Shown here in pieces: positions 51,761 to 62,566 of a DNA stretch of 64,000 nucleotides. How positions within the stretch are numbered: the stretch's first letter is position 1; the number at the start of each line of letters is the position of its first letter. The stretch is from IMG/VR virus record IMGVR_UViG_3300043399_000877, positions 248,001 through 312,000 of that record; one strand, written 5' to 3'. A model generated the notes under the pieces. It did no database searches and had not been told where the DNA came from. It was given only the letters and a program-made list of their open reading frames with translations. The translations under genes and the position numbers were made by a program.

Positions 51761-54427
51761 TTAGACGATCCTGAACAAACTGGTAAAGGTTTCATTTTGT
51801 TTTGTGCTTTCTAAGTCATATTCCAGAACGCCAATAAGGTTGTCTAGCTTATTGTCAATGATTGTTTCTTCCATTGCAGCATCATCAAAAGGCAATTCCT
51901 TAAACCAGTCAGGAAGTCTAAGTTCGTCAGTCGGATATGCAACACTTGTAAATCCCATCGGGTTATTTTTTAATTTACAAACAATAACCTTCATTCCATC
52001 AACGATTTCAATGCTGTATTTGTCGCCGTTCATTCGTTTTAATGTATTCCAGTTAATACTTGCCCGAACGTGTCCGGGTAAAACTGCTTTACTGCCTTTT
52101 TTCTTTTCTTCACGTTCGTAATGCTGAATGTTGTTTGCACGTTTTGGAGAACCTTTTTCGTAGCCAGGACGGCTCTTAAATTCATTCCTGAATTCTTTAA
52201 CTGATGCAAGTATTTCAGCTTCGGGGCGGCCTTTTAGAACCATAAGTAACACTTCCATTAAGTATTCTTGCATGAATACCGGAGTATCCGAACGCTTTAG
52301 GTCCAATCCCATTGCCTTTACTTTTCCAGGTTTGCCGTCCACGTCTTTTCTCTTACCCTCTTCGTCATATACTAACACAGCATAACGCTTCTTGGTAATA
52401 AAAAGTCCACTTTCACCGACTATTTCTCGACCAGCAGCAATAACTTCTGCTCTGCTCTTTGGACAATGGAAAGCCTGGCCCATGAAATCGGAGAAACTGC
52501 GGTTTACTTCATCAGCTATTTGGTCGTATAGTTCAACAACTGTTTCCTTGGTCCACGGAACCAAGTTCTTTTCAATGTCATCTTTCAATACCGGGTACAT
52601 GCTAAAATACACAGAGTCTGTATCACCGTATATGATAGTTTTTCCAATATGATTGTATTCTCCAGTTGCAATTTCATTAACTTTTGCAGCCATGTGCTTG
52701 GCAATTCCACGACCAGTAAGGGTTGTACTTTGTCCGATGCGCTTATCAAAAAATCTACAACCTGGGTTAAGAATAGCACCATAAAGACTGTTAAGGTTGA
52801 TCTTTTTAACCAGCTGTCGTTTATCCCAAAACTCTATTTCAGATTGTACTCCAGCTTCAACAGCTTTTTTCTTCATAGCTTGAAGCTCTTTACGCTCTTT
52901 GTACCATCTTGCAAGCAATCCGGGTATAACAGCCTCAAACTCAGTCGTAAAAATAGTGCCGTTTGCACTGATCATCCAAGGCTTGTTACTGTCAAATATA
53001 AGTTTAAATGCCTGTGCTGCGCTCATTACTTCGCTATTACCGTTAACCCAGTCAACAGTTACGTCGAAATCGACTCGCTCATCCATAATTGCAGCATATT
53101 CTAGGGTACCAAACAATCCTTCCCATGCAGCACTGAAACTCTTTTTCTTTAGAGTCATCTGATCTTCAATATATTTGTCAGTGGCTGTTGGCCTAACTTG
53201 ACCGATTATACTTTCTGGTGCCATGTTTAATGCACGAATAACCGATGGATACAGGCTGTTCAAGTCCATTGAGCCAATCCAACGATGGAAGCCTTTTTTT
53301 GGATTCGCAACATATGCGCCGGCTGCTTGAGTGTCTTCCTCAAAGTTTCCACGATTCTGGACTTGCATTCCACGTCGATGTGCTTCGTTAATGATTGCCT
53401 GTTCAGTAACAGCCACAGCGCCCATGGTTGTCTGTATTAACACAGTGTTATCATGAGCGATCTCGTTAGCCAGATCAATAAACCGCAGTTTTTTATCTAG
53501 TTTGTCAAGTAGTGCAACGTCCTGTCGGTTATACTCAATGAATGTTCTAAAATCATTGTTGTAGAGTTGATCCAGTGTGCCTTCATATTGCGTTTTACGT
53601 TCGTTTAGTTCATATTCACCGATTGCGTCCAGTCGATAACTGTGTCGTTCTTCGTAAGTATACTTTCTGTAAAGTTCAAGACTGTCTAAATGTATGCGGC
53701 CTACTAAATCGTAAGTTTCGGCAGTCTTACCAAATTTTTCATACTCACGTTTCTTTGGAAACTGATTCCATAAACAAAATCTGCGAGTATCGCTTTTGCT
53801 CATAACTCTTGCTACACGGTTTACCATGTAGGGAATATCGTAGCCTTCGCTGTTCCAACCACTGAGAATGTCTGCATCCTCAATTAAGTTGAAAAACTCT
53901 TCAAGCATTTCAATTTCAGACTCGAATATAAAAGTATTGCTGAAATCTTTAACTAATTCACGAGCATCGGCAACGGATAGCGATTTGGGTGGGATCGCCA
54001 AAGTTACCAAACTGTCCATCCATTGTAAATGCACAGTGATAGCAGTGATTGGCATAAATGGATCGTTTGTTGGAGCAAATCCCCGGTTTGGGTCAAAGTC
54101 AGTTTCAATGTCAAAGAACGCAATATGCAACTTTGGTGCATCTTGGTTGATGTAGTTTTCACTTAAACATTGAAATATAGGATTTATATCACTTTCGAAC
54201 AACCGCTTGTTCTTGTTTATGGCAAGTTCTTTACGATACTCTTTGGTATTTTTACAAACGATCCTGGAAAGCGGATCTCCATAGACGCTGCGAAACTTTC
54301 CACGCTGGTCTTCATAATAAAAAGTATATTTTGTGGGATATTGTTGATACATGCGCTTTCCGTCTTTGCGCTCTACAACATTTATAACGTCAGCATCCCT
54401 ATCAAAAAATGCATCAATGTACGGCAT
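51761..54427 (-). CDS. Family B DNA polymerase (gp43-like)
   Basis: Exo motifs DIET, GWN...YD and YN.QD. Pol motifs DLNSLYPS, K...NSLYG, YGDTDS and KKRY. Confidence 0.96.
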   Translation of the reverse strand: MPYIDAFFDRDADVINVVERKDGKRMYQQYPTKYTFYYEDQRGKFRSVYGDPLSRIVCKNTKEYRKELAINKNKRLFESDINPIFQCLSENYINQDAPKLHIAFFDIETDFDPNRGFAPTNDPFMPITAITVHLQWMDSLVTLAIPPKSLSVADARELVKDFSNTFIFESEIEMLEEFFNLIEDADILSGWNSEGYDIPYMVNRVARVMSKSDTRRFCLWNQFPKKREYEKFGKTAETYDLVGRIHLDSLELYRKYTYEERHSYRLDAIGEYELNERKTQYEGTLDQLYNNDFRTFIEYNRQDVALLDKLDKKLRFIDLANEIAHDNTVLIQTTMGAVAVTEQAIINEAHRRGMQVQNRGNFEEDTQAAGAYVANPKKGFHRWIGSMDLNSLYPSVIRALNMAPESIIGQVRPTATDKYIEDQMTLKKKSFSAAWEGLFGTLEYAAIMDERVDFDVTVDWVNGNSEVMSAAQAFKLIFDSNKPWMISANGTIFTTEFEAVIPGLLARWYKERKELQAMKKKAVEAGVQSEIEFWDKRQLVKKINLNSLYGAILNPGCRFFDKRIGQSTTLTGRGIAKHMAAKVNEIATGEYNHIGKTIIYGDTDSVYFSMYPVLKDDIEKNLVPWTKETVVELYDQIADEVNRSFSDFMGQAFHCPKSRAEVIAAGREIVGESGLFITKKRYAVLVYDEEGKRKDVDGKPGKVKAMGLDLKRSDTPVFMQEYLMEVLLMVLKGRPEAEILASVKEFRNEFKSRPGYEKGSPKRANNIQHYEREEKKKGSKAVLPGHVRASINWNTLKRMNGDKYSIEIVDGMKVIVCKLKNNPMGFTSVAYPTDELRLPDWFKELPFDDAAMEETIIDNKLDNLIGVLEYDLESTKQNETFTSLFRIV

Positions 54428-55394: not shown

Positions 55395-55994
55395 TTACTT
55401 GACGTACGCACCAATTCTACCATGAACGTCCGGGTATTCACGGTAGCTGTATCCCGGTGGTGGGTTGACGATTTCGCCCTCCCACACTGGAATAAACTCA
55501 CTGATGCCACCGTCAAAGTCTTCATTTTTTCTAAAATGAACTTCTATGAGGCGGCCACCAATGAACTCGCAATTTATATATTCGTATTTTTCTTTGAATG
55601 ATTTTAAGATATCAGGAAATGCGACAACATCATCCGTTTTTTTCCATGATTTCCATCGCGTAAAAGTGTTGTCTGGTTTAAATCCTTCAACACACAATAT
55701 TTGTTCCCCGTTTCTGTAATCCACACTTAGGTGTCTTCCGTCAAACCATTCACACCAAAAAAATCCCAACGGTAAATGATCAGTGTTATCGTCTAACCAA
55801 AGTTTTTGTGCCCCCAATCCAAGCCCCATTAGGTTCACACACGGGCGCACAATATAAAAATCAGGTTTAGGAACATCTAGCCCAGTTGGACCGCAAATGT
55901 ATCCGGATTTTCTTGATAGTATCAGTTTGTCTAAGACCCAGATATGATCTGGGTCTATGTTTTTCCAAGCAATCTCCTCGGCGCTAAGGCTCAT
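55395..55994 (-). CDS. Minimal ATP-grasp-like protein
   Basis: YIVRP..N..G.G.GA, FWCEWF.G.H.SVD, IN.EFI...LIEVHFR. Confidence 0.5.
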   Translation of the reverse strand: MSLSAEEIAWKNIDPDHIWVLDKLILSRKSGYICGPTGLDVPKPDFYIVRPCVNLMGLGLGAQKLWLDDNTDHLPLGFFWCEWFDGRHLSVDYRNGEQILCVEGFKPDNTFTRWKSWKKTDDVVAFPDILKSFKEKYEYINCEFIGGRLIEVHFRKNEDFDGGISEFIPVWEGEIVNPPPGYSYREYPDVHGRIGAYVK

Positions 55995-56917
55995 TGGAAA
56001 TAAAATATCATCCCGGGTTCGTTATTGCCTGCTTTGTTTTTTATATTGTCTTTACGAATCATTCCAAGTTCTCGTAGTGGTTCATAAAACTCTCGCTCTT
56101 TGACTGATGAGCTCATAGCCATTTGTTTAGGCCATGATGGATATGTCACTTTTATAGCTGTAACTGGTTGTTTTGTTACCTGATCTCTGACACGGTGGTT
56201 GATGTAAACAGCTTTTCCACCCAACGTTTTATCAATAAAAGCGGCAGCTTTTTTGACTCTTCTAAGATGATCTGCATTAAAAAACTCTGGCATACGTTCA
56301 ATAGCTTGTGCATTTTTATCAGCAGCATCGTCTGACCACGCTTTAGCTTGTAGTGGGCTCACGGCGCGTCGCCCGCCGGTCATTCTCTCATCGTCGTCTT
56401 TTCCAAACCCCGGAGCCTCTTTTACGTGTTCTGGTTTGCCCTTGTGTTTGGTTGCAGCATAATCATGCGCTGCTTTCTTGCTCATGCCTTTGGCTACTTT
56501 AGCAACTTCTGGACTTGCCGGCTCTTCGCCTTTTTTGGCAGCATAAACCATACCCATGAACTTTTGTTGTGCTTTTGACTTTGCTTTTTCAAGAAGTGCC
56601 TTGTATTCAAGTTCTTCTGACTCACTCATTGCAGCCTTTGGTTTGCGGTTTTCCGGCATAACAGTGGCAGTGGTCATTTGATCATAACTTAAACTTTTGT
56701 AAACACTGTCAATGTATTCAGCAGCTTTGGTTATTTTTGCCTGTTGCCACCCTTCAAGACCCTTTTCTTCGCTTATGCCTTTTAGCAGTGCATGAAGTTT
56801 TATGGCGTTGTCTGCAAGATGATACAAGTCGGCACGTGCCATCTGCACTTCGTGATCCCAGTCGGCACTTCCAGCAAGCTCTGATAGTCCTTCGGATAAT
56901 TTGTTTTTCTTAGTCAT
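55991..56917 (-). CDS. Multi-module putative internal head protein containing a DUF3008-like module
   Basis: KAKSKAQQKFMG.V.A.KKGE...ATKHKGKPEH. Also a LEGWQQAKITKA module. Confidence 0.6.
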   Translation of the reverse strand: MTKKNKLSEGLSELAGSADWDHEVQMARADLYHLADNAIKLHALLKGISEEKGLEGWQQAKITKAAEYIDSVYKSLSYDQMTTATVMPENRKPKAAMSESEELEYKALLEKAKSKAQQKFMGMVYAAKKGEEPASPEVAKVAKGMSKKAAHDYAATKHKGKPEHVKEAPGFGKDDDERMTGGRRAVSPLQAKAWSDDAADKNAQAIERMPEFFNADHLRRVKKAAAFIDKTLGGKAVYINHRVRDQVTKQPVTAIKVTYPSWPKQMAMSSSVKEREFYEPLRELGMIRKDNIKNKAGNNEPGMIFYFQ

Positions 56918-56944
56918 AGGTATCTCCAAAAGTATTTTAAATAT

Positions 56945-57154
56945 TTATCGTTTTATGGGTCCACCGAATATATTTGTTGTCATATCAAGTGCGTTTTTAA
57001 CGGTTCCGTCTGGATTCGTTGCTTGTTGAGCCCGCGGCAATCCGTTCTTACTTTTACCTATTTTGCGCTTAACTGCCGGCATCGGTGCTGATGCTATTGA
57101 CCCGGCTCCGGTTCCGCCTGCTGTTGCAGATTCTAAAATTTCACGTATTTTCAT
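56945..57154 (-). CDS. Small putative internal head protein
   Basis: MKIREILE N-terminus. Confidence 0.6.
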   Translation of the reverse strand: MKIREILESATAGGTGAGSIASAPMPAVKRKIGKSKNGLPRAQQATNPDGTVKNALDMTTNIFGGPIKR

Positions 57155-57174
57155 TTTTAATACTGTTTGTCCCT

Positions 57175-58335
57175 TTAAAAAAAATCTACACTAAAAGCAT
57201 CATCATAAAAAGCATCCACTGCTCGGTCGTATTCATCTTTGCTAAGGTATTGGTTATGTGTCAAATCAGTTAGACCTGGTTCAGTAACTACGGCATATGC
57301 AAACTTTCTCCGCAAATCCTTATATTCGGGGAGTAGGTTTGTTATTTTCAATGTCCATTTTGGATTTCTTTTTATTAATTTATGCTGAAGATCATAAGGA
57401 ACCGGGTGTCTAGTGGGATCCTTGAGGTCGAGCTTGGGCATAAAACTGGGTTTTTTTGCTATAAGATCCGATACCGCTTCATCACTTAAATCTAACAAAT
57501 CAAAGTTTTTATGTGCCTCATATCCACCACCTTTTATTCCCGTTATGAAATCTTGCAGTAATAAGTCTACTATATACGGATGATATTTAGCAGCAGGCTT
57601 TTCATTAGCACGACCTTTCATCTCTCCTAGCTTCCCATTTTTATCTAAAATGAAAGTTAGGTGAGGTTTTTGTTTTTCACCTTCAATAGTTCTAAAACTA
57701 AGTATTCGATCACCGGCTTTTTCACTAGGGACGTTGCCGCAGTGCCCCATGGCATCTGCTTCGTCACTGCATGCTCCGCGGGCAAGCATGACCCATGCAT
57801 ATTTCCCATATTTTAGTATGATTTTATCATTTTCTTTTGGATTAACCCATTGTTTTTGTTTAGCATTGTGCTCTGCCTCTAAACTTTTTAGTTTGTCCGT
57901 CATCTGACGCGGCAGCATGTTAGCGTCCCAAGTCAGTTGATCCAATAAAGGTATGCTCAACGAATATGTTAGATGCTCTAGTGCATCGGGATTTTGCCAG
58001 CGCAAACTAAAATAGCTGACATCAGCTGTGCGAGTTTCGTCGTAGTCTACTTTGGTAATACGCCGGAAAAGCTGTTTAAGTTCTGCTGTTCTAGATTCAA
58101 ACTTTGGATCGGCCAGTATAGCTGATACTTTTTTATGTGTTTCACTAATTCTGAACCAACGCAGATACCAAACAATTCTGTCTTGACGTTTTAGCGTATT
58201 GCGCAGTTTTCGAACTACACTGTCAGCGCGCCCAGCATCTATGATGTCATTGTTAACCATGGGTTCAAGCATTTGCTTATATTGCGCTTGGTTCTCATCA
58301 AGTCTCAATATTGTTCTAAATTCCAAAAATTTCAT
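57175..58335 (-). CDS. Putative internal head protein with PcfJ-like domain
   Basis: MKFLEF N-terminus. EADAMGHCG...ILSFR...PHLT.....E.KG..N. Confidence 0.6.
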   Translation of the reverse strand: MKFLEFRTILRLDENQAQYKQMLEPMVNNDIIDAGRADSVVRKLRNTLKRQDRIVWYLRWFRISETHKKVSAILADPKFESRTAELKQLFRRITKVDYDETRTADVSYFSLRWQNPDALEHLTYSLSIPLLDQLTWDANMLPRQMTDKLKSLEAEHNAKQKQWVNPKENDKIILKYGKYAWVMLARGACSDEADAMGHCGNVPSEKAGDRILSFRTIEGEKQKPHLTFILDKNGKLGEMKGRANEKPAAKYHPYIVDLLLQDFITGIKGGGYEAHKNFDLLDLSDEAVSDLIAKKPSFMPKLDLKDPTRHPVPYDLQHKLIKRNPKWTLKITNLLPEYKDLRRKFAYAVVTEPGLTDLTHNQYLSKDEYDRAVDAFYDDAFSVDFF

Positions 58336-59066
58336 TATGTCCCCCCAACCAGTTTGCCATGCAAAGGATGCCGAGTTCGACCGGGCTTTGCTTTTGGCAT
58401 AGGCCCGCCGCCCCGTGCCTGGCCTTTGACGCCAGTTGCGTATTCTTCATTTGATTTTTTATTGCGACCGCTTTTCATGTTTGCAAGCCAGTGTGCCATA
58501 CGTTGTTTTTCGCCTGAGCTATTTTTAGCAGTTTTTCGTAAACTACTCACGCTGGCCTTGGTGTTTACTCCCATCCGTTTGGATAATCCTCGTCTTCCCG
58601 GGTTCCGCCCGTCTTTGAAGTTTTCATTTTTTTGATTTATTAATTCTGAATTTATAAATCTGTCAGCAGACACAGGGTTTGCTATAAGCAAATGCCCATT
58701 TTCACTGTATGCCCTGTAAATCTTGTCTTGTGGTAATATTTTAAAAGAAATTTCGTCTCCAAACCAATTTCCAGACGATGTGCTTACAAAAATTCCTTTT
58801 GGAGTACGCCAGTCTTTTCCAGCTCTTAAATCGTATAAGGCAAATTCTCGTTCTCCCGAAACGTCGGCCCTAGGGCGTAATCCACCTGATTTTAAAATTT
58901 CAGCCATTTTTTTGGTTTGGTGATAGACTGTTGTTCCGTTTAGCTTTTCTCGCTCTTCTGGAGAAAGTTCAAAAACATTAAGTCCAACAGTATTTCCAGG
59001 AGGACTTATGATTTTTCCGGATTGATTGTTGTTTTCGTTTATGTTTGAAAATTCACTAAATCGCAT
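58335..59066 (-). CDS. Putative internal head protein with ADP-ribosyltransferase-like domain
   Basis: MRFSEF N-terminus. VYHQT...IL..GGL.P...GIFVSTS. Confidence 0.55.
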   Translation of the reverse strand: MRFSEFSNINENNNQSGKIISPPGNTVGLNVFELSPEEREKLNGTTVYHQTKKMAEILKSGGLRPRADVSGEREFALYDLRAGKDWRTPKGIFVSTSSGNWFGDEISFKILPQDKIYRAYSENGHLLIANPVSADRFINSELINQKNENFKDGRNPGRRGLSKRMGVNTKASVSSLRKTAKNSSGEKQRMAHWLANMKSGRNKKSNEEYATGVKGQARGGGPMPKAKPGRTRHPLHGKLVGGT

Positions 59067-59085
59067 ACCTGACCCAATCTTTATA

Positions 59086-60540
59086 TTATTTATTCAACCA
59101 GTCAAATAACCTTTTTGGTGGGTCAGAGTCAAGTGTATGCCCGCCTTGAATAGCAGCCCATTCAAGTGCAGTATATTTTTCCGGCAACCCTTTTGTAAAC
59201 TTATCCAAATCAAGAACATCTGCTTCTATTGTAGTTTCGCCTCGCAATTTGGCGGCAAATACCGCATGATGCCCGTCACGAACAAACAGTCGATTTTTAT
59301 ATTTTACTATGGGAATACGTTTGTTAGTTTTTACTTTGTCGCGCAACGTGTCTTCGTCTTCTATTCGCACAAACGGTTGTGTTGGCGTAAGTTTTTGGAT
59401 ATCGACTGTTTGGGGGACCGAATTGCTCAATAATTTTTTAGTTGCTGCTGAACGATAACGGTCTGTTGGGTCTGTGTGTAGATGTTTTACTACGTCGTAA
59501 AATGCCGATTCCATCTCGTCAACTAGGTCATCGCTAAATCCCTTTAGTGGAACATACTGACCGGGAACGGTTCCACTACGATCGTACCCGTAGTTTTTTT
59601 CTTTACCGTAAATTTTGGCGGTACGTTTTGCAAGATCAACTGGATCTGCCCTGCGTTCTTCTATGGTCTGCCGCTTGCCGTCACTTCTTAATGCTGGCGG
59701 AAATCCGTCACGAGTTACACGGTTTCCAAATTTTGCCGCTTCGATTCGTGTTTGGTCTACCCCAACATCAACGGTCGTGTTTACGCCCCGAACAATTCTA
59801 CCATCTTCGTTCATATTGGTTTTCATACGAGTTGCAGTGGCAGCTATGCGTATTTCTTCGTCATCGCCCAAATATGCTTCGTGGAAGTTTTCGGCAGTTG
59901 CCGGTCGAACGGTCTCTTCGTATTCGTCTATGATATAGGTGTATATATTTGGATGTTTTGTTACTAACTCGTACCATAGTTTTTTGGAACCGGGGGTTTG
60001 TTGATTATCACTTATGACCTTAATTTTGTATTTGAGTATGGCTATTGAATACAACTGTGATGCAAGGCCGCGTCCACGTAGTTCTTTACTAAAACGAACT
60101 GTACTTTCGTAAAATCCGTTTTCGTATGGAGACATGGTCAAATCTCCGAGTATTCTTATTGGCTTGCTTTTATCATCAATTATGTTAAAAGTGTGTTCTT
60201 GATTTAAGAATCTGTGATAAACAGCGAATCCACCCACAGTGTAGGGAGTTTTTTCTAGAGATTTTAAGTACTGTTGGTTTTGGCTGTCCTGGGTAAAATC
60301 AATGTCGTCCGGGACCCCGGCAATCATTCTTATTTCTTTTATTCGTCCGTGCTTTCCACGAGCGCCGCCCTGCCACCACTTGCACCATCCTTCAGGACTT
60401 ATTTTACCAGCAACTGCGGTACACCGATCAGGATCTCGCCACATAGTGCAATAAATGCACTTTTGCCCAGCATGCGGTTTAGCCTGATAGCCGGCCTCAC
60501 TTTTGCTACTTTTAGATTCCGAAAGGTCGTCCAGCCTCAT
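59086..60540 (-). CDS. Multidomain protein: HiPIP + GNAT + ParB/Srx-like
   Basis: YQ..P..GQKC..C..W....C..V.G.I.P.GWC..W, then LRGRGLASQLY...SD..QT.G...LW, then L.PTQ...DGHH. Confidence 0.7.
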   Translation of the reverse strand: MRLDDLSESKSSKSEAGYQAKPHAGQKCIYCTMWRDPDRCTAVAGKISPEGWCKWWQGGARGKHGRIKEIRMIAGVPDDIDFTQDSQNQQYLKSLEKTPYTVGGFAVYHRFLNQEHTFNIIDDKSKPIRILGDLTMSPYENGFYESTVRFSKELRGRGLASQLYSIAILKYKIKVISDNQQTPGSKKLWYELVTKHPNIYTYIIDEYEETVRPATAENFHEAYLGDDEEIRIAATATRMKTNMNEDGRIVRGVNTTVDVGVDQTRIEAAKFGNRVTRDGFPPALRSDGKRQTIEERRADPVDLAKRTAKIYGKEKNYGYDRSGTVPGQYVPLKGFSDDLVDEMESAFYDVVKHLHTDPTDRYRSAATKKLLSNSVPQTVDIQKLTPTQPFVRIEDEDTLRDKVKTNKRIPIVKYKNRLFVRDGHHAVFAAKLRGETTIEADVLDLDKFTKGLPEKYTALEWAAIQGGHTLDSDPPKRLFDWLNK

Positions 60541-60917
60541 TAGACACCATACCGATTTCTTTTTGGTTTTGCAACCGGGCTAGTTTTGTTTATAGTATCA
60601 AGTTCTTTGCTTTTCATATCGCCTTTGTTTAAGTCAGTATGGCTTGCCCCGGCTGCCTTGTAAGCATGTTTTAGCATTTCTGCTTCTAACTCTGAATATG
60701 GATGCGCCGATTTTCTCTTACCGATCCAACTTTTGCGATCAATATCAATAGGATTAGTACCATCAGCACACGCTAATGCCATCATAAGACGGTATTGTAC
60801 GTAGTCGCTGTTCATATGTTCAGCATCGCTGTATGTGTGTACACCACGAGTAGGCATTTGTTGACGTTTAGTTAGCTTGCCTTCAGTTCGTTCTGTTATT
60901 AATTCTCTTAATCTCAT
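60540..60917 (-). CDS. Putative internal head protein
   Basis: MRLRELITE N-terminus. Confidence 0.65.
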   Translation of the reverse strand: MRLRELITERTEGKLTKRQQMPTRGVHTYSDAEHMNSDYVQYRLMMALACADGTNPIDIDRKSWIGKRKSAHPYSELEAEMLKHAYKAAGASHTDLNKGDMKSKELDTINKTSPVAKPKRNRYGV

Positions 60918-61129
60918 TTTGTTCGACCTCTAAATTGCACTGGTCCGTTGAGGTAAGGCAAGCTAAACCACAACTTAAACCATTCAGGATCACCGGGTTT
61001 TAGACCCATTTCTTTTTCTAAACGTTTCTTTTCCATACCAGTAACTGATATGTTTGAACCGTCGTATAGACTATATCCTTTAAATTCGTTAATGCCAGCT
61101 AGTTTTTTAATGTAATCAAGTTCGTCCAT
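60914..61129 (-). CDS. Small phage protein (IKKLAGI motif)
   Basis: ATGA coupling. Confidence 0.65.
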   Translation of the reverse strand: MDELDYIKKLAGINEFKGYSLYDGSNISVTGMEKKRLEKEMGLKPGDPEWFKLWFSLPYLNGPVQFRGRTK

Positions 61130-61668
61130 TATCGTATAAACTCACTTAATTTATTAAAAAGCCTGTCCGTATACTTATCGTCTGGTACTCCGCGAGCAAA
61201 ACCCGCACGATCGCCGATGCGAACAAGATGTCGTTGTGTGCTTGCACTCATGCCAGAAACATCAGCGGCATCCGGATCACGATCTCCAGCACTGATTACT
61301 GATATAGTGTCGAAGCTATATTCATGGTTATTATATTTTTTTAAAAGTATATCAAAAGATTCTACACGATCCGATCCCACAACCATCACAATGTCAGTAT
61401 AACCTTTTGATTCCAAAAGTTTTAACACGTCAATAATGTTTGATGCGTGGTCGTCACCCACAACTACACCCTTAAAAAACTCAGCAGCAAATTCTTTTTT
61501 TATGTTATACGGTAACGGGTCAGTTCTTGGATGTGTTTTGTGACTTAAAAAAACATAGTGGTCGCCGGGCTGCTTGCATAGAAATTCTACAAGTCGCAAA
61601 TGCCCGGTAGTGGGAGGGTTCATTCTCCCGAACGTAAATACTGCTGTTTTTTTAAGTCTTACGGTCAT
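61129..61668 (-). CDS. HxGH nucleotidyltransferase (cytidyltransferase-like)
   Basis: FGRMNPPTTGH, VVGSDR, GMSAS. Confidence 0.85.
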   Translation of the reverse strand: MTVRLKKTAVFTFGRMNPPTTGHLRLVEFLCKQPGDHYVFLSHKTHPRTDPLPYNIKKEFAAEFFKGVVVGDDHASNIIDVLKLLESKGYTDIVMVVGSDRVESFDILLKKYNNHEYSFDTISVISAGDRDPDAADVSGMSASTQRHLVRIGDRAGFARGVPDDKYTDRLFNKLSEFIR

Positions 61669-62006
61669 GGGTTCTCCAGTGGTGGCATACTTGACTCAGG
61701 GTTGAGTAGTGCATTAATTACTTGCATCTTAGTATGTTTGTCAAATATTTTTTCAGGATCATGTGGAATATTAAATTTTTTGCAATATACTTTTATTCCA
61801 TGATCCACGATTGGAAGTAGTGACTGGGTGTTTATTTCTCTGTTTGTCTTCTTCATATTTTGAAGAGACAACAATGCTGGATACAAGTGCTTGCGATAAA
61901 ACATACGGTCGTTTTGCATGAATATAACTAAATCTTGGCCAGGGTCGTAATTCAACACCGGTTCGTCTTCGCGAGTATTACCGAAAAACTCGTTTATTTT
62001 TACCAT
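61665..62006 (-). CDS. Hypothetical phage protein
   Basis: MVKINEF N-terminus, operon context. Confidence 0.65.
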   Translation of the reverse strand: MVKINEFFGNTREDEPVLNYDPGQDLVIFMQNDRMFYRKHLYPALLSLQNMKKTNREINTQSLLPIVDHGIKVYCKKFNIPHDPEKIFDKHTKMQVINALLNPESSMPPLENP

Positions 62007-62566
62007 TTCTTACAACTCCAAAATCTGGCTTTATGGCGTGGTCCCGGATTATCGCAATTGTGTCTTGCTCTAAAACTCCGGCGTCTCGCCGGGTTGGACT
62101 TTTTAATTCTCATGTTTGGATCACCAAAGTTAACCTTTACAACATTGCCACCGGGTTTCCGCACATACACTTTGAATTTTTTTACGTCGCCACGCATGGG
62201 TTTACCTAACGGGACTGAGCGACCTTGGTATTCTGCCTCGTCGAGAGTTTCATCTTCATTAAACCACATTACACCGTATTCGGCAAAAAAGTCGTCACCC
62301 TCGTATGTTTCTTCTTCGATATCTTCATCCATGTCTGTACTAAATTCAATATCAAAGTCATTAAATCCGCTATCAAAAAGGTAAGTGCTTAGTTTGTTTG
62401 CATACTCGTCGCTTTCGGTTTCGCTTAATGCTCTTGGTAACGGAATATAAAAACACTGGGCTCCTTGATCAGTTTCAAATAGTTGACTTTCCGGAAATAT
62501 AGAACTGTCTATATTCTCAGTCAGTGTATCTTTTTTCTCAAATATAACTCTTACAAAATGTTCCAT
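62000..62566 (-). CDS. Two-module phage protein (acidic N-terminal module, basic C-terminal FRARHNC module)
   Basis: C-terminal AEYQGR.V.L.KP...V.FGD...RRSFRARHNC...FWSC..W. Confidence 0.65.
   Translation of the reverse strand: MEHFVRVIFEKKDTLTENIDSSIFPESQLFETDQGAQCFYIPLPRALSETESDEYANKLSTYLFDSGFNDFDIEFSTDMDEDIEEETYEGDDFFAEYGVMWFNEDETLDEAEYQGRSVPLGKPMRGDVKKFKVYVRKPGGNVVKVNFGDPNMRIKKSNPARRRSFRARHNCDNPGPRHKARFWSCKKW

Follow-up and report, generated by a model that had tools for sequence, protein, structure and literature searches.

The gene under study lies on the minus strand at positions 59086–60540 of the window, i.e. the whole 64,000-nucleotide stretch of DNA that was analysed, in the 382-kb genome of a T4-related jumbo phage. 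It consists of 484 codons and a stop, and its start codon is backed by the relatives, in which M1 is invariant and the N-terminus conserved. From the N- to the C-terminus the protein is organised as a leader followed by modules A to E, all on the same strand. The leader (residues 1-8, MRLDDLSE; 60517–60540) ends in L-x-E and resembles a short T4 capsid-targeting sequence (CTS). Module A (residues 9-69; 60334–60516) is a minimal high-potential Fe-S protein (HiPIP) of the PioC type, with Cys28/31/40/53, Y18, W52 and W55/56, and ends in ...GKHGR-IKE69. Module B (residues 70-245; 59806–60333) has a GNAT fold with RGRGLA at residues 155-160 and ends in MNE245. It is followed by module C (residues 246-295; 59656–59805), which reads DGRIVRGVNTTVDVG...KFGNRVTRDGFPP, is highly conserved, is predicted to be poorly structured and ends in TIEE295. 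Module D (residues 296-454; 59179–59655) combines an N-terminal helical part (RRADPVDLAKRTAKIYGK...) with a ParB/Srx-fold core at residues 374-449 and ends in LPE454, and the protein closes with module E (residues 455-484; 59089–59178), a conserved tail reading KYTALEWAAIQGGHTL...KRLFDWLNK. The 484-aa protein is a mosaic of modules and also a polyvalent-type protein, having at least two unrelated effector-type domains of which solo versions exist elsewhere.

The gene is found ~ 5 kb from a T4-type PolB gene and beside a cytidyltransferase gene, at a locus where five consecutive genes bear a leader, a motif that is ~ 10 times commoner at N-termini than at internal Met residues. The neighbouring genes are likewise on the minus strand. 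A 69-aa gene (56945–57154) starts with the leader MKIREILE followed directly by SATAGGTGAGSIAS, a near-copy of the segment around the predicted maturation site of the capsid protein; the score of this match was reached by none of 2000 shuffles. The next gene, of 386 aa (57175–58335), has the leader-like N-terminus MKFLEFRTILRLDE, and the 243-aa gene next to it (58335–59066) has the leader MRFSEFSNINE and a C-terminal module, NFKDGRNPGRRGLSKR...AHWLANMKSGR, that also ends the relative P0023. On the other side of the studied gene, a 125-aa gene (60540–60917) carries the leader MRLRELITE.

An initial annotation, made from the sequence, had recognised a minimal HiPIP signature in module A and had proposed an HMM search against the HiPIP family. 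With Pfam HIPIP (PF01355) the whole protein reaches 17.8 bits, under the gathering score of 22, and residues 1-66 alone reach 22.7 bits, above it; the family members match in 22 of 22 cases. Furthermore, a 22-sequence profile of the module (residues 1-66) searched against the PDB has PioC (6xyv_A) as its top match with E = 5.5e-12 and six other HiPIP structures next in rank. The alignment to PioC is ungapped, profile positions 9-60 corresponding to chain residues 3-54. Cys28, 31, 40 and 53, the sole cysteines of the 484-aa protein, align to the PioC ligands Cys22/25/34/47 with an identical spacing, C-x2-C-x8-C-x12-C (2-8-12). The aromatic shield is present as well: Y18 is invariant, W52 precedes the fourth Cys and W55/W56 stand at +2/+3 of it, all of them invariant or nearly so. 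The profile match to PioC, the Pfam match and the retained Cys spacing and aromatic residues bear out the HiPIP signature, and by sequence and profile module A is a HiPIP that would be expected to bind a [4Fe-4S] cluster. AF2 displays low confidence on this module (pLDDT 30-50) in two runs, one on the full protein and one, using a more diverse alignment, on the minimal A-C-E protein of 150 aa; PioC itself is without clear secondary structure.

HiPIPs have been described as Tat-exported periplasmic electron carriers. The absence of an export signal, already pointed out in the initial annotation, holds for the N-terminus MRLDDLSESKSSKSEAGYQ: no RR occurs ahead of residue 296, and hydrophobic stretches in the first 45 residues reach at most 3 residues. 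A twin-arginine leader is also absent from all 11 of the 11 stand-alone HiPIP relatives, small phage proteins of 64-76 aa.

The two further domain calls, GNAT with RGRGLA and ParB/Srx-like with PTQ...DGHH, stand at the level of the fold. Residues ~ 96-239 are modelled as a GNAT fold (AF2, pLDDT 80-95), and the model aligns to the ICL2 C-domain, Rv1916, AAC(2')-Ia, RimL, KacT, AtaT and MccE over 105-125 residues with Z of 6-7.5, values that are middling by the tool's own caveat. SpeG is matched in fold with a probability of 0.96, and phage NAT_SF proteins match module B with E down to 8e-9. The segment R155-G-R-G158-L-A160, in which A160 is nearly invariant, falls at the position of motif A (Q/R-x-x-G-x-G/A) in the beta4-alpha3 turn/CoA-binding loop, just ahead of the modelled helix 160-170. 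No GNAT Pfam match is obtained on the whole protein, and Acetyltransf_1 stays under its gathering score of 20.7, with 12.9 bits for the target domain and, in register, 18.6 bits for the best isolated relative domain. Based on the model, module B is a GNAT-fold domain and a putative acyltransferase.

In module D, residues ~ 374-449 are modelled as a ParB/sulfiredoxin fold. The core aligns to sulfiredoxin 6ky4 with Z 6.6 and an rmsd of 2.6 Å over 75 of 89 residues, and to ParB 6t1f with Z 6.0, while Foldseek gives a probability of 1.00 against ParB-N, KorB, Noc, SbnI and Atu1540; phage ParB/Sulfiredoxin proteins also match. The motifs are PTQ (386-388), DGHH (422-425) and LRGE (432-435). The Ala that had been noticed after DGHH, in place of the usual Arg, is confirmed and is found in most members of the D family, with a nearly invariant Arg433, in LRGE, 8 residues on. 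Pfam ParBc_2 scores 19.1-20.2 bits, below 23.6, and gives weak matches in 27 of 36 family members; a profile of the domain against PDB sequences returned a single non-significant match, Atu1540 (E = 1.8). On the fold matches, module D is read as a ParB/Srx-fold domain, one which may have enzymatic activity. Its homologues number two near-identical relatives by word search in similar-length proteins and 90 by exhaustive HMMER search, and a tblastn search of cultured phages with a member of the D family gave no match. D-family domains also occur inside proteins of 1000-4600 aa, and 31 of 59 stand-alone D proteins bear a CTS-like leader, e.g. MFSFKEFIAE followed directly by RRIDP.

The architecture is only one of several in which the same modules are found. 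Indeed, A, C and E are also found combined with different cargo, namely GH19, deoxyribonucleotidase, PNK-like, RelA/SpoT-HD and other GNAT domains; stand-alone small proteins are known for modules A, C and D, and minimal relatives consist of A-C-E (150 aa), A-C or A alone. On a syntenic contig, the slot of the studied gene holds leader-D-E only. For modules C and E, both short and strongly conserved, a lack of structure is predicted, and an ESM Atlas search with the C-E unit gave scores < 0.8 and no named cluster. Within the 382-kb genome, blastp and module HMMs found no paralogues of the modules. The three domain calls of the initial annotation were thus all right, firmly for the HiPIP and at fold level for GNAT and ParB/Srx; what it had missed is the shuffled mosaic, the conserved modules C and E and the stand-alone HiPIPs.

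The ends of the modules follow a common pattern. The leader MRLDDLSE is common to the relatives (MKIQDLFE and similar) and to N-terminal C modules. The CTS of T4, MKTYQEFIAE, which is cleaved off, was read directly in T4 ipII and ipIII; stand-alone HiPIPs start with MKTFKEYLTE, MKSFTEFLNE or MKSFKEFLFE, and the HiPIP of Synechococcus phage S-SRM01 with MKSFQEFLFE, and the leaders of the stand-alone relatives agree with MKTYQEFIAE in 5-7 of 10 positions when counted by hand. The leader of the studied protein, with 8 residues against 10 in the T4 CTS, is less CTS-like than the stand-alone versions. Inside the proteins, x-[IVL]-x-E follows the HiPIP module in 34/34 cases and [LIVMF]-x-E precedes the C module in 70/70. 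The studied protein has nine h-x-E (hydrophobic-x-Glu) sites, and each of its five module boundaries coincides exactly with one of them; the junction ahead of module E is irregular, many relatives having E-x-P/RY there. The motif is short, and the internal h-x-E could be leader remnants after gene fusion, or part of the fold of the modules. A gp21-type prohead protease is encoded at genome positions 191368-191793 (Peptidase_S77, 90.2 bits) and its gene adjoins those of the scaffold and the capsid protein. In T4, gp21 cleaves Alt at ITE-6 and LTE-619, and the cut in gp23 falls behind residue 65, in FLTE/A; the homologous site in the capsid protein of the jumbo phage reads YLAE/SATAG.

We favour, with a confidence slightly short of even, the reading that the gene product is a polyvalent precursor of internal head proteins, which would be packaged, cut into its modules and injected; each of these steps is one that we infer. 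The leader MRLDDLSE would act like the T4 CTS and bring the protein into the prohead core, where the gp21-type protease would cut after Glu at the h-x-E sites E8, E69, E245 and E295, perhaps also at E454. The products would be a PioC-type HiPIP of ~ 60 residues, a GNAT-fold acyltransferase, the C peptide and a ParB/Srx-fold protein with the E tail. Once released, these may exit the capsid with the DNA and be the first agents at work in the host cell. A target in the host would be acylated by the GNAT domain, the ParB/Srx domain may be an NTP-binding/-hydrolysing enzyme or a nickase acting on host nucleic acid or nucleotides, and the HiPIP may serve as a small one-electron module with a buried [4Fe-4S] cluster. 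The internal proteins of T-even phages are diverse anti-defence proteins with the CTS alone in common, and polyvalent phage proteins, proposed to be packaged in the capsid, bring together GNAT, ParB/Srx, RelA/SpoT and lysozyme domains (PMC5512222). The earlier suggestion of an injected carrier or counter-defence effector set hence gains from the CTS-like leader, the h-x-E at five boundaries, the gp21-type protease and the polyvalent-type cargo, its packaging and injection staying at the level of what these features suggest. Against the cargo model stands the extreme conservation of C and E, which a pure cargo reading does not predict, and the deoxyribonucleotidase and PNK-like cargo fit ordinary cytoplasmic nucleotide metabolism equally well.

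Extended to the whole family, the packaged-precursor reading becomes more tentative. T4-related jumbo phages and cyanophages would package a signal-less HiPIP of the PioC type that is delivered with the DNA, either by itself or at the head of a polyprotein, and the prohead protease would cut the polyprotein at h-x-E into effectors (GNAT, ParB/Srx, lysozyme-like, nucleotidases, RelA/SpoT). Such an arrangement would amount to a shuffling cassette system, and to the first redox cofactor protein as a virion-borne effector.

Another reading, rather unlikely in our estimation, takes the protein as a cytoplasmic, non-packaged multidomain enzyme of phage nucleotide/nucleic-acid metabolism, in which A, C and E would be adaptors or tethers gathering varied enzymes at a single hub of the phage or the host. 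The E tail ...K-LFDW would then be, for example, a peptide that binds a hub or clamp; the leader would have a part in translation or stability, and the h-x-E sites would be gene-fusion leftovers. The cargo is indeed mostly nucleotide-directed (deoxyribonucleotidase, PNK-like, RelA/SpoT-HD, ParB/Srx), the T4-type PolB gene is near and the cytidyltransferase gene adjoins the studied one, C and E resemble linear binding motifs in their shortness, conservation and predicted lack of structure, and the end of PolB, ...TSLFRIV, has "LF" in common with the E tail. A gp45-type clamp, as a partner for this tail, was not detectable with PF09116 or PF02916, and therefore no partner can be named for it. 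However, a cytoplasmic enzyme leaves unexplained the T4-CTS-like decapeptide on stand-alone modules, the hydrophobic residue at -2 with the boundary Glu in 70/70 and 34/34 junctions, and the neighbour's copy of the capsid maturation site. Moreover, the GH19 cargo targets the cell wall and not the cytoplasm.

It is improbable, in turn, that module A is derived from a HiPIP and has lost its redox-active cluster, persisting as a Zn-bound or cluster-stabilised structural knob, e.g. as a packaging or propeptide part that is discarded after cleavage at E69. Such a role would agree with the position of module A, always directly behind the leader, with its presence in A-C-E proteins without an enzyme domain and with the lack of a confident AF2 fold, and four Cys could also bind Zn. 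But the conservation goes beyond the four Cys to all the HiPIP hallmarks (the exact PioC spacing, Tyr18, Trp52 and the aromatics after the fourth Cys), residues shielding a cluster would be needless at a Zn site, and module A also exists as a free protein of 64-76 aa. Least probable is an auxiliary metabolic electron carrier that, like cyanophage plastocyanin/ferredoxin genes, would feed host photosynthetic or respiratory electron transport: PioC, the closest solved relative, is a periplasmic shuttle to the photosynthetic reaction centre and a homologue is found in a cyanophage, but the protein has no Tat or Sec signal and therefore cannot reach the periplasm, where the HiPIP partners are, its HiPIP is fused to GNAT and ParB/Srx domains, and module A travels with lysozyme-like and nucleotide-directed cargo, not with redox genes.

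The HiPIP had also been taken as a hint at a proteobacterial host. This is not supported, because a signal-less HiPIP homologue is encoded by Synechococcus phage S-SRM01 too; in a tblastn search of cultured phages with the whole protein, the only matches were S-SRM01 (module A) and Phosso (module C). The HiPIP of S-SRM01 is the stand-alone protein QPX48026.1, and the C module of Sinorhizobium phage Phosso likewise stands alone, as XYS97783.1. A scan of bacterial genomes for HiPIPs of the phage type found one short MAG contig only and thus gives no host information. A proteobacterial host is plausible on other grounds, as the nearest cultured relatives of the PolB sequence are Sinorhizobium phage Phosso and Agrobacterium phage Atu_ph07.

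Together, these proteins form a whole phage family of HiPIPs without an export signal, free or fused to effector-type enzymes, which is absent from the searched literature and from PHROGs. Indeed, literature searches for phage or viral HiPIPs gave nothing relevant, the paper on S-SRM01 makes no mention of one, and a PHROGs scan of A-C-E, C-E and stand-alone A and C proteins returned no family. If the cluster is real, an oxygen-tolerant Fe-S module would here be at work in a cellular setting new to it, either cytoplasm or virion. From the pattern of leaders and junctions one may furthermore derive a simple sequence rule by which proteins that are packaged in the capsid and injected could be predicted in uncultured T4-related phages, and the pattern suggests that such phages assemble multi-effector polyproteins from interchangeable modules. 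This bears on anti-defence biology and on the use of CTS-like tags for cargo delivery.

With PioC, the 54-residue HiPIP of Rhodopseudomonas palustris TIE-1 (6xyv), the phage module shares the GYQ motif, the Trp that precedes the fourth Cys and an aromatic residue 2-3 positions beyond that Cys, and ~ 40% of the PioC residues equal the consensus of the phage family by hand count. In contrast to PioC, which has a Tat signal and is a free periplasmic electron shuttle, the phage module bears an acidic leader of 8-10 residues and a conserved basic extension, GGAYGKRGK; it exists as a free small protein or as the first domain of a multidomain protein, and its cluster is only predicted.

The resemblance to the T4 proteins IPI/IPII/IPIII and Alt, which are CTS-directed, processed by gp21 and injected, lies in the short N-terminal leader ending in (L/I)-x-E, in the gp21-type protease of the genome and in a variable locus where genes with leaders follow one another and encode mature parts that are not related to each other. 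Beyond the leader there is no sequence similarity to them. Whereas the T4 internal proteins are small basic inhibitors, the cargo here consists of enzymes and an Fe-S domain, and the modules are strung together with internal h-x-E in a polyprotein-like layout that is not described for the T4 proteins in the literature examined.

The polyvalent proteins of phages and conjugative elements, proposed to be packaged in the capsid and delivered with the DNA (Iyer et al. 2017, PMC5512222), likewise have several unrelated effector domains per polypeptide, including GNAT, ParB/Srx, RelA/SpoT and peptidoglycan hydrolases. However, a HiPIP or iron-sulfur domain has 0 occurrences in that survey and modules C and E are not mentioned either; the proteins described here are small (150-800 aa), with junctions that resemble protease sites, and their ParB family (DGHH-A...LRGE) has no Arg directly after DGHH. 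With the ParBc_2/Atu1540-type and sulfiredoxin-type domains, finally, module D has in common the fold and the alignment of L-PTQ...DGHH to Atu1540, and it differs from them by scores under the Pfam thresholds, by the Ala in place of Arg after DGHH and by an extra N-terminal helical region (296-373) that is specific to the phage family.

The 484-residue product of the minus-strand ORF 59086..60540 was divided by hit mapping into five modules behind a leader (residues 1-8), namely A, a HiPIP domain (9-69), B, a GNAT fold (70-245), C, a short conserved module DGRIVKGVNTTVDVG...KFGN.V.KDG.PP (246-295), D, a ParB/Srx fold (296-454), and E, a second short module RYT..EWA...GGH.LE...LFDW (455-484). 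Modules A, C and E are found at 55-90% identity in proteins otherwise unrelated to this one, where the cargo is a GH19 'chitinase', a 5'(3')-deoxyribonucleotidase or HAD, PNK-like, RelA/SpoT-HD or other GNAT domains. Minimal forms are enzyme-free A-C-E (150 aa), A-C (124 aa) and A by itself (64-76 aa); furthermore, the cultured cyanophage S-SRM01 encodes module A alone in a 67-aa ORF and phage Phosso module C alone in a 64-aa ORF. Contig L014, syntenic with window positions 60540-62566, carries only leader-D-E in the same slot, and no paralogue of any module was found elsewhere in the 381,886-bp genome. The gene at 58335-59066 (minus strand) holds in its C-terminal ~ 60 residues a module ...NFKDGRNPGRRGLSKRMGVNTKASVSSLRKTAKNSSGEKQRMAHWLANMKSGR... 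that is also the C-terminus of the relative P0023, and its tail ...GRTRHPLHGKLVGG is found again in a small L014 gene; both are additional shuffled mini-modules.

Residues 1-66 recur, strongly conserved, in dozens of metagenomic proteins. The profile of 22 module A sequences matches PioC (PDB 6xyv) over its full length and ungapped (E = 5.5e-12), followed by six further HiPIP structures. Against Pfam HIPIP the whole protein is sub-threshold (17.8 bits) and the isolated domain (first 66 residues) clears the curated cut-off (22.7 vs 22 bits), the family being matched by 22 of 22 members. The N-terminal HiPIP domain proposed in the initial annotation is therefore borne out by the PioC profile match and by Pfam, and it belongs to a previously undescribed phage family. 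Its Cys28, 31, 40 and 53, the only four cysteines of the protein, are spaced as the PioC ligands Cys22/25/34/47, and the aromatic shield is kept and invariant (Trp ahead of the last of these Cys and an aromatic side chain 2-3 residues beyond it). AF2 gave no confident model of module A in two attempts. PioC, the smallest known HiPIP, has hardly any secondary structure and takes its fold around the cluster, so that this outcome speaks neither for nor against a HiPIP fold. Bacterial HiPIPs are Tat-exported as holoproteins; as initially claimed, no export signal is present, neither a twin-arginine motif nor a hydrophobic signal region. We infer that module A binds a cluster. HiPIP Fe-S domains are of the buried-cluster, oxidation-tolerant kind, and such a domain would not, at least, be out of place in a virion. 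A scan of 185,579 species genomes gave a single match to the phage-type HiPIP, on L019, an 8.4-kb MAG contig (JBIPMW010000269.1, Crocinitomicaceae bin) that is probably of phage origin and was co-binned with the MAG.

For the two larger domains, AF2 with a composite alignment gave a pLDDT of 80-95 over residues ~ 80-240 and ~ 300-455. Both domains named beforehand were supported at the fold level. Residues 96-239 align almost only with GNAT structures (Z 6-7.5), and domain B finds phage NAT_SF proteins as well (E down to 8e-9); against Acetyltransf_1 its sequence matches in register, below threshold. In the model, RGRGLA (155-160) lies at the turn preceding helix 160-170, the place at which GNATs bind the CoA pyrophosphate. 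The domain D core (374-449) superimposes on sulfiredoxin (Z 6.6, rmsd 2.6 Å, 75/89 residues) and also matches ParB-N, KorB, Noc, SbnI and Atu1540 in fold, together with phage ParB/Sulfiredoxin proteins. An exhaustive HMMER search yielded 90 relatives of domain D, most standing alone (145-175 aa) and some within proteins of 1000-4600 aa. In the family motif, L-PTQ...DGHH-A...LRGE, Ala does indeed stand where an Arg normally follows the His pair, and a conserved Arg is present 8 residues further on.

The viral record (381,886 bp), of which the window is positions 248001-312000, is rated complete by CheckV. It encodes a T4-type PolB (window 51761-54427; phrog_262, E ~ 1e-200), whose nearest relatives are those of Sinorhizobium phage Phosso (50%), Agrobacterium phage Atu_ph07 (45%) and Rak2-like jumbo phages. 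A prohead protease of the gp21 type (Peptidase_S77, 90 bits) is encoded as well, and the genes beside it are one resembling a scaffold gene and one for a capsid protein of the gp23 type (332 bits). On this evidence, the phage belongs to the T4 superfamily. The HiPIP had been read as a hint of a proteobacterial host, which does not hold since a Synechococcus phage encodes one. Such a host is plausible for a separate reason: the phages with a related PolB have Alpha- and Gammaproteobacteria as hosts. At ~ 26 kb the window switches gene strand and composition, from plus strand and GC ~ 0.32-0.36 (1-26000) to minus strand and GC ~ 0.38-0.49 (26000-64000; peak 0.49 at 34-36 kb). Outside the window, at genome 351161-352628, two short additional Gp23 family matches (36.6 and 33.1 bits) sit in small open frames (147 and 112 aa); they could represent fragments, or a vertex-protein gene that has diverged. 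Other minus-strand genes of the window encode a 312-aa protein with a DUF3008 segment (55991-56929; 32 bits), a cytidyltransferase-like protein (61129-61668; phrog_3041, E = 9e-45) kept in L014, and a conserved C-terminal module ...FRARHNCDNPGPRHKARFWSCKKW (62000-62566; phrog_7595), also present in L014.

The T4 capsid-targeting sequence (CTS), read directly in ipII and ipIII, is MKTYQEFIAE and is removed once the internal proteins sit in the prohead. Stand-alone HiPIPs begin with MKTFKEYLTE, MKSFTEFLNE, MKSFKEFLFE or MLKFSHFLQE, that of S-SRM01 with MKSFQEFLFE, and 31 of the 59 stand-alone D proteins have a CTS-like start, such as MFSFKEFIAE/RRIDP (slash, cleavage point, known or predicted). 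A shorter leader of 8 residues is seen in our protein (MRLDDLSE) and in many relatives (MKIQDLFE), and this 8-mer also stands ahead of N-terminal C modules (MKIQELFE/DGRIV). The leader is carried by five consecutive genes (window 56945-60917, minus strand), and a second cluster with the motif lies at genome 48764-51162. Based on 493 crude gene calls of this genome, M-[KR]-h-x-[DE]-[LFI] (h, hydrophobic) is ~ 10 times commoner at N-termini (12/493) than at internal Met (5/2191).

Hydrophobic-x-Glu also precedes each module inside the protein: five of its nine such sites fall exactly at the five module boundaries, the remaining four within folded domains. Elsewhere in the family, x-[IVL]-x-E comes after 34/34 HiPIP modules, [LIVMF]-x-E comes before 70/70 C modules, and VTE comes before an internal HiPIP, that of P0032. 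T4 gp21 cleaves Alt at ITE-6 and LTE-619, and gp23 after residue 65 (FLTE/AEIGG); the homologous, predicted maturation site of the present capsid protein (genome 188965-190152) is YLAE/SATAGATSAGNIAT. In a 69-aa ORF (window 56945-57154, minus strand; MKIREILE/SATAGGTGAGSIAS), a CTS-like leader is followed by a near-copy of this segment, with an alignment score reached by 0 of 2000 shuffles; its product may be a decoy, a competitor or a co-packaged peptide.

In the simplest account, which we hold tentatively, internal head proteins would arise from this protein as their precursor. Its leader would direct it into the prohead core, the gp21-type protease would cut the modules apart, and the resulting pieces would pass into the host on ejection. 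Alternatively, it could act as a cytoplasmic multidomain enzyme with A, C and E as tethers, which we consider somewhat unlikely. That module A is HiPIP-derived and serves as a redox-inactive structural knob seems improbable, and a classical electron-carrier AMG is very improbable given the missing export signal and the fusion partners. The initial observation of a signal-less HiPIP-GNAT-ParB/Srx fusion is confirmed, and its interpretation as perhaps injected is supported in part.

The leader and junction pattern provides a testable signature of packaging and processing. A precursor of internal head proteins would fit two precedents, the T-even internal proteins and the polyvalent capsid-packaged phage proteins. 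The paper describing the latter makes no mention of a HiPIP or iron-sulfur domain (PMC5512222). The T-even internal proteins are diverse and anti-defence, with the CTS as their only common feature, and the domain repertoire of the polyvalent proteins (GNAT, ParB/Srx, RelA/SpoT, lysozyme) overlaps the cargo of the present family.
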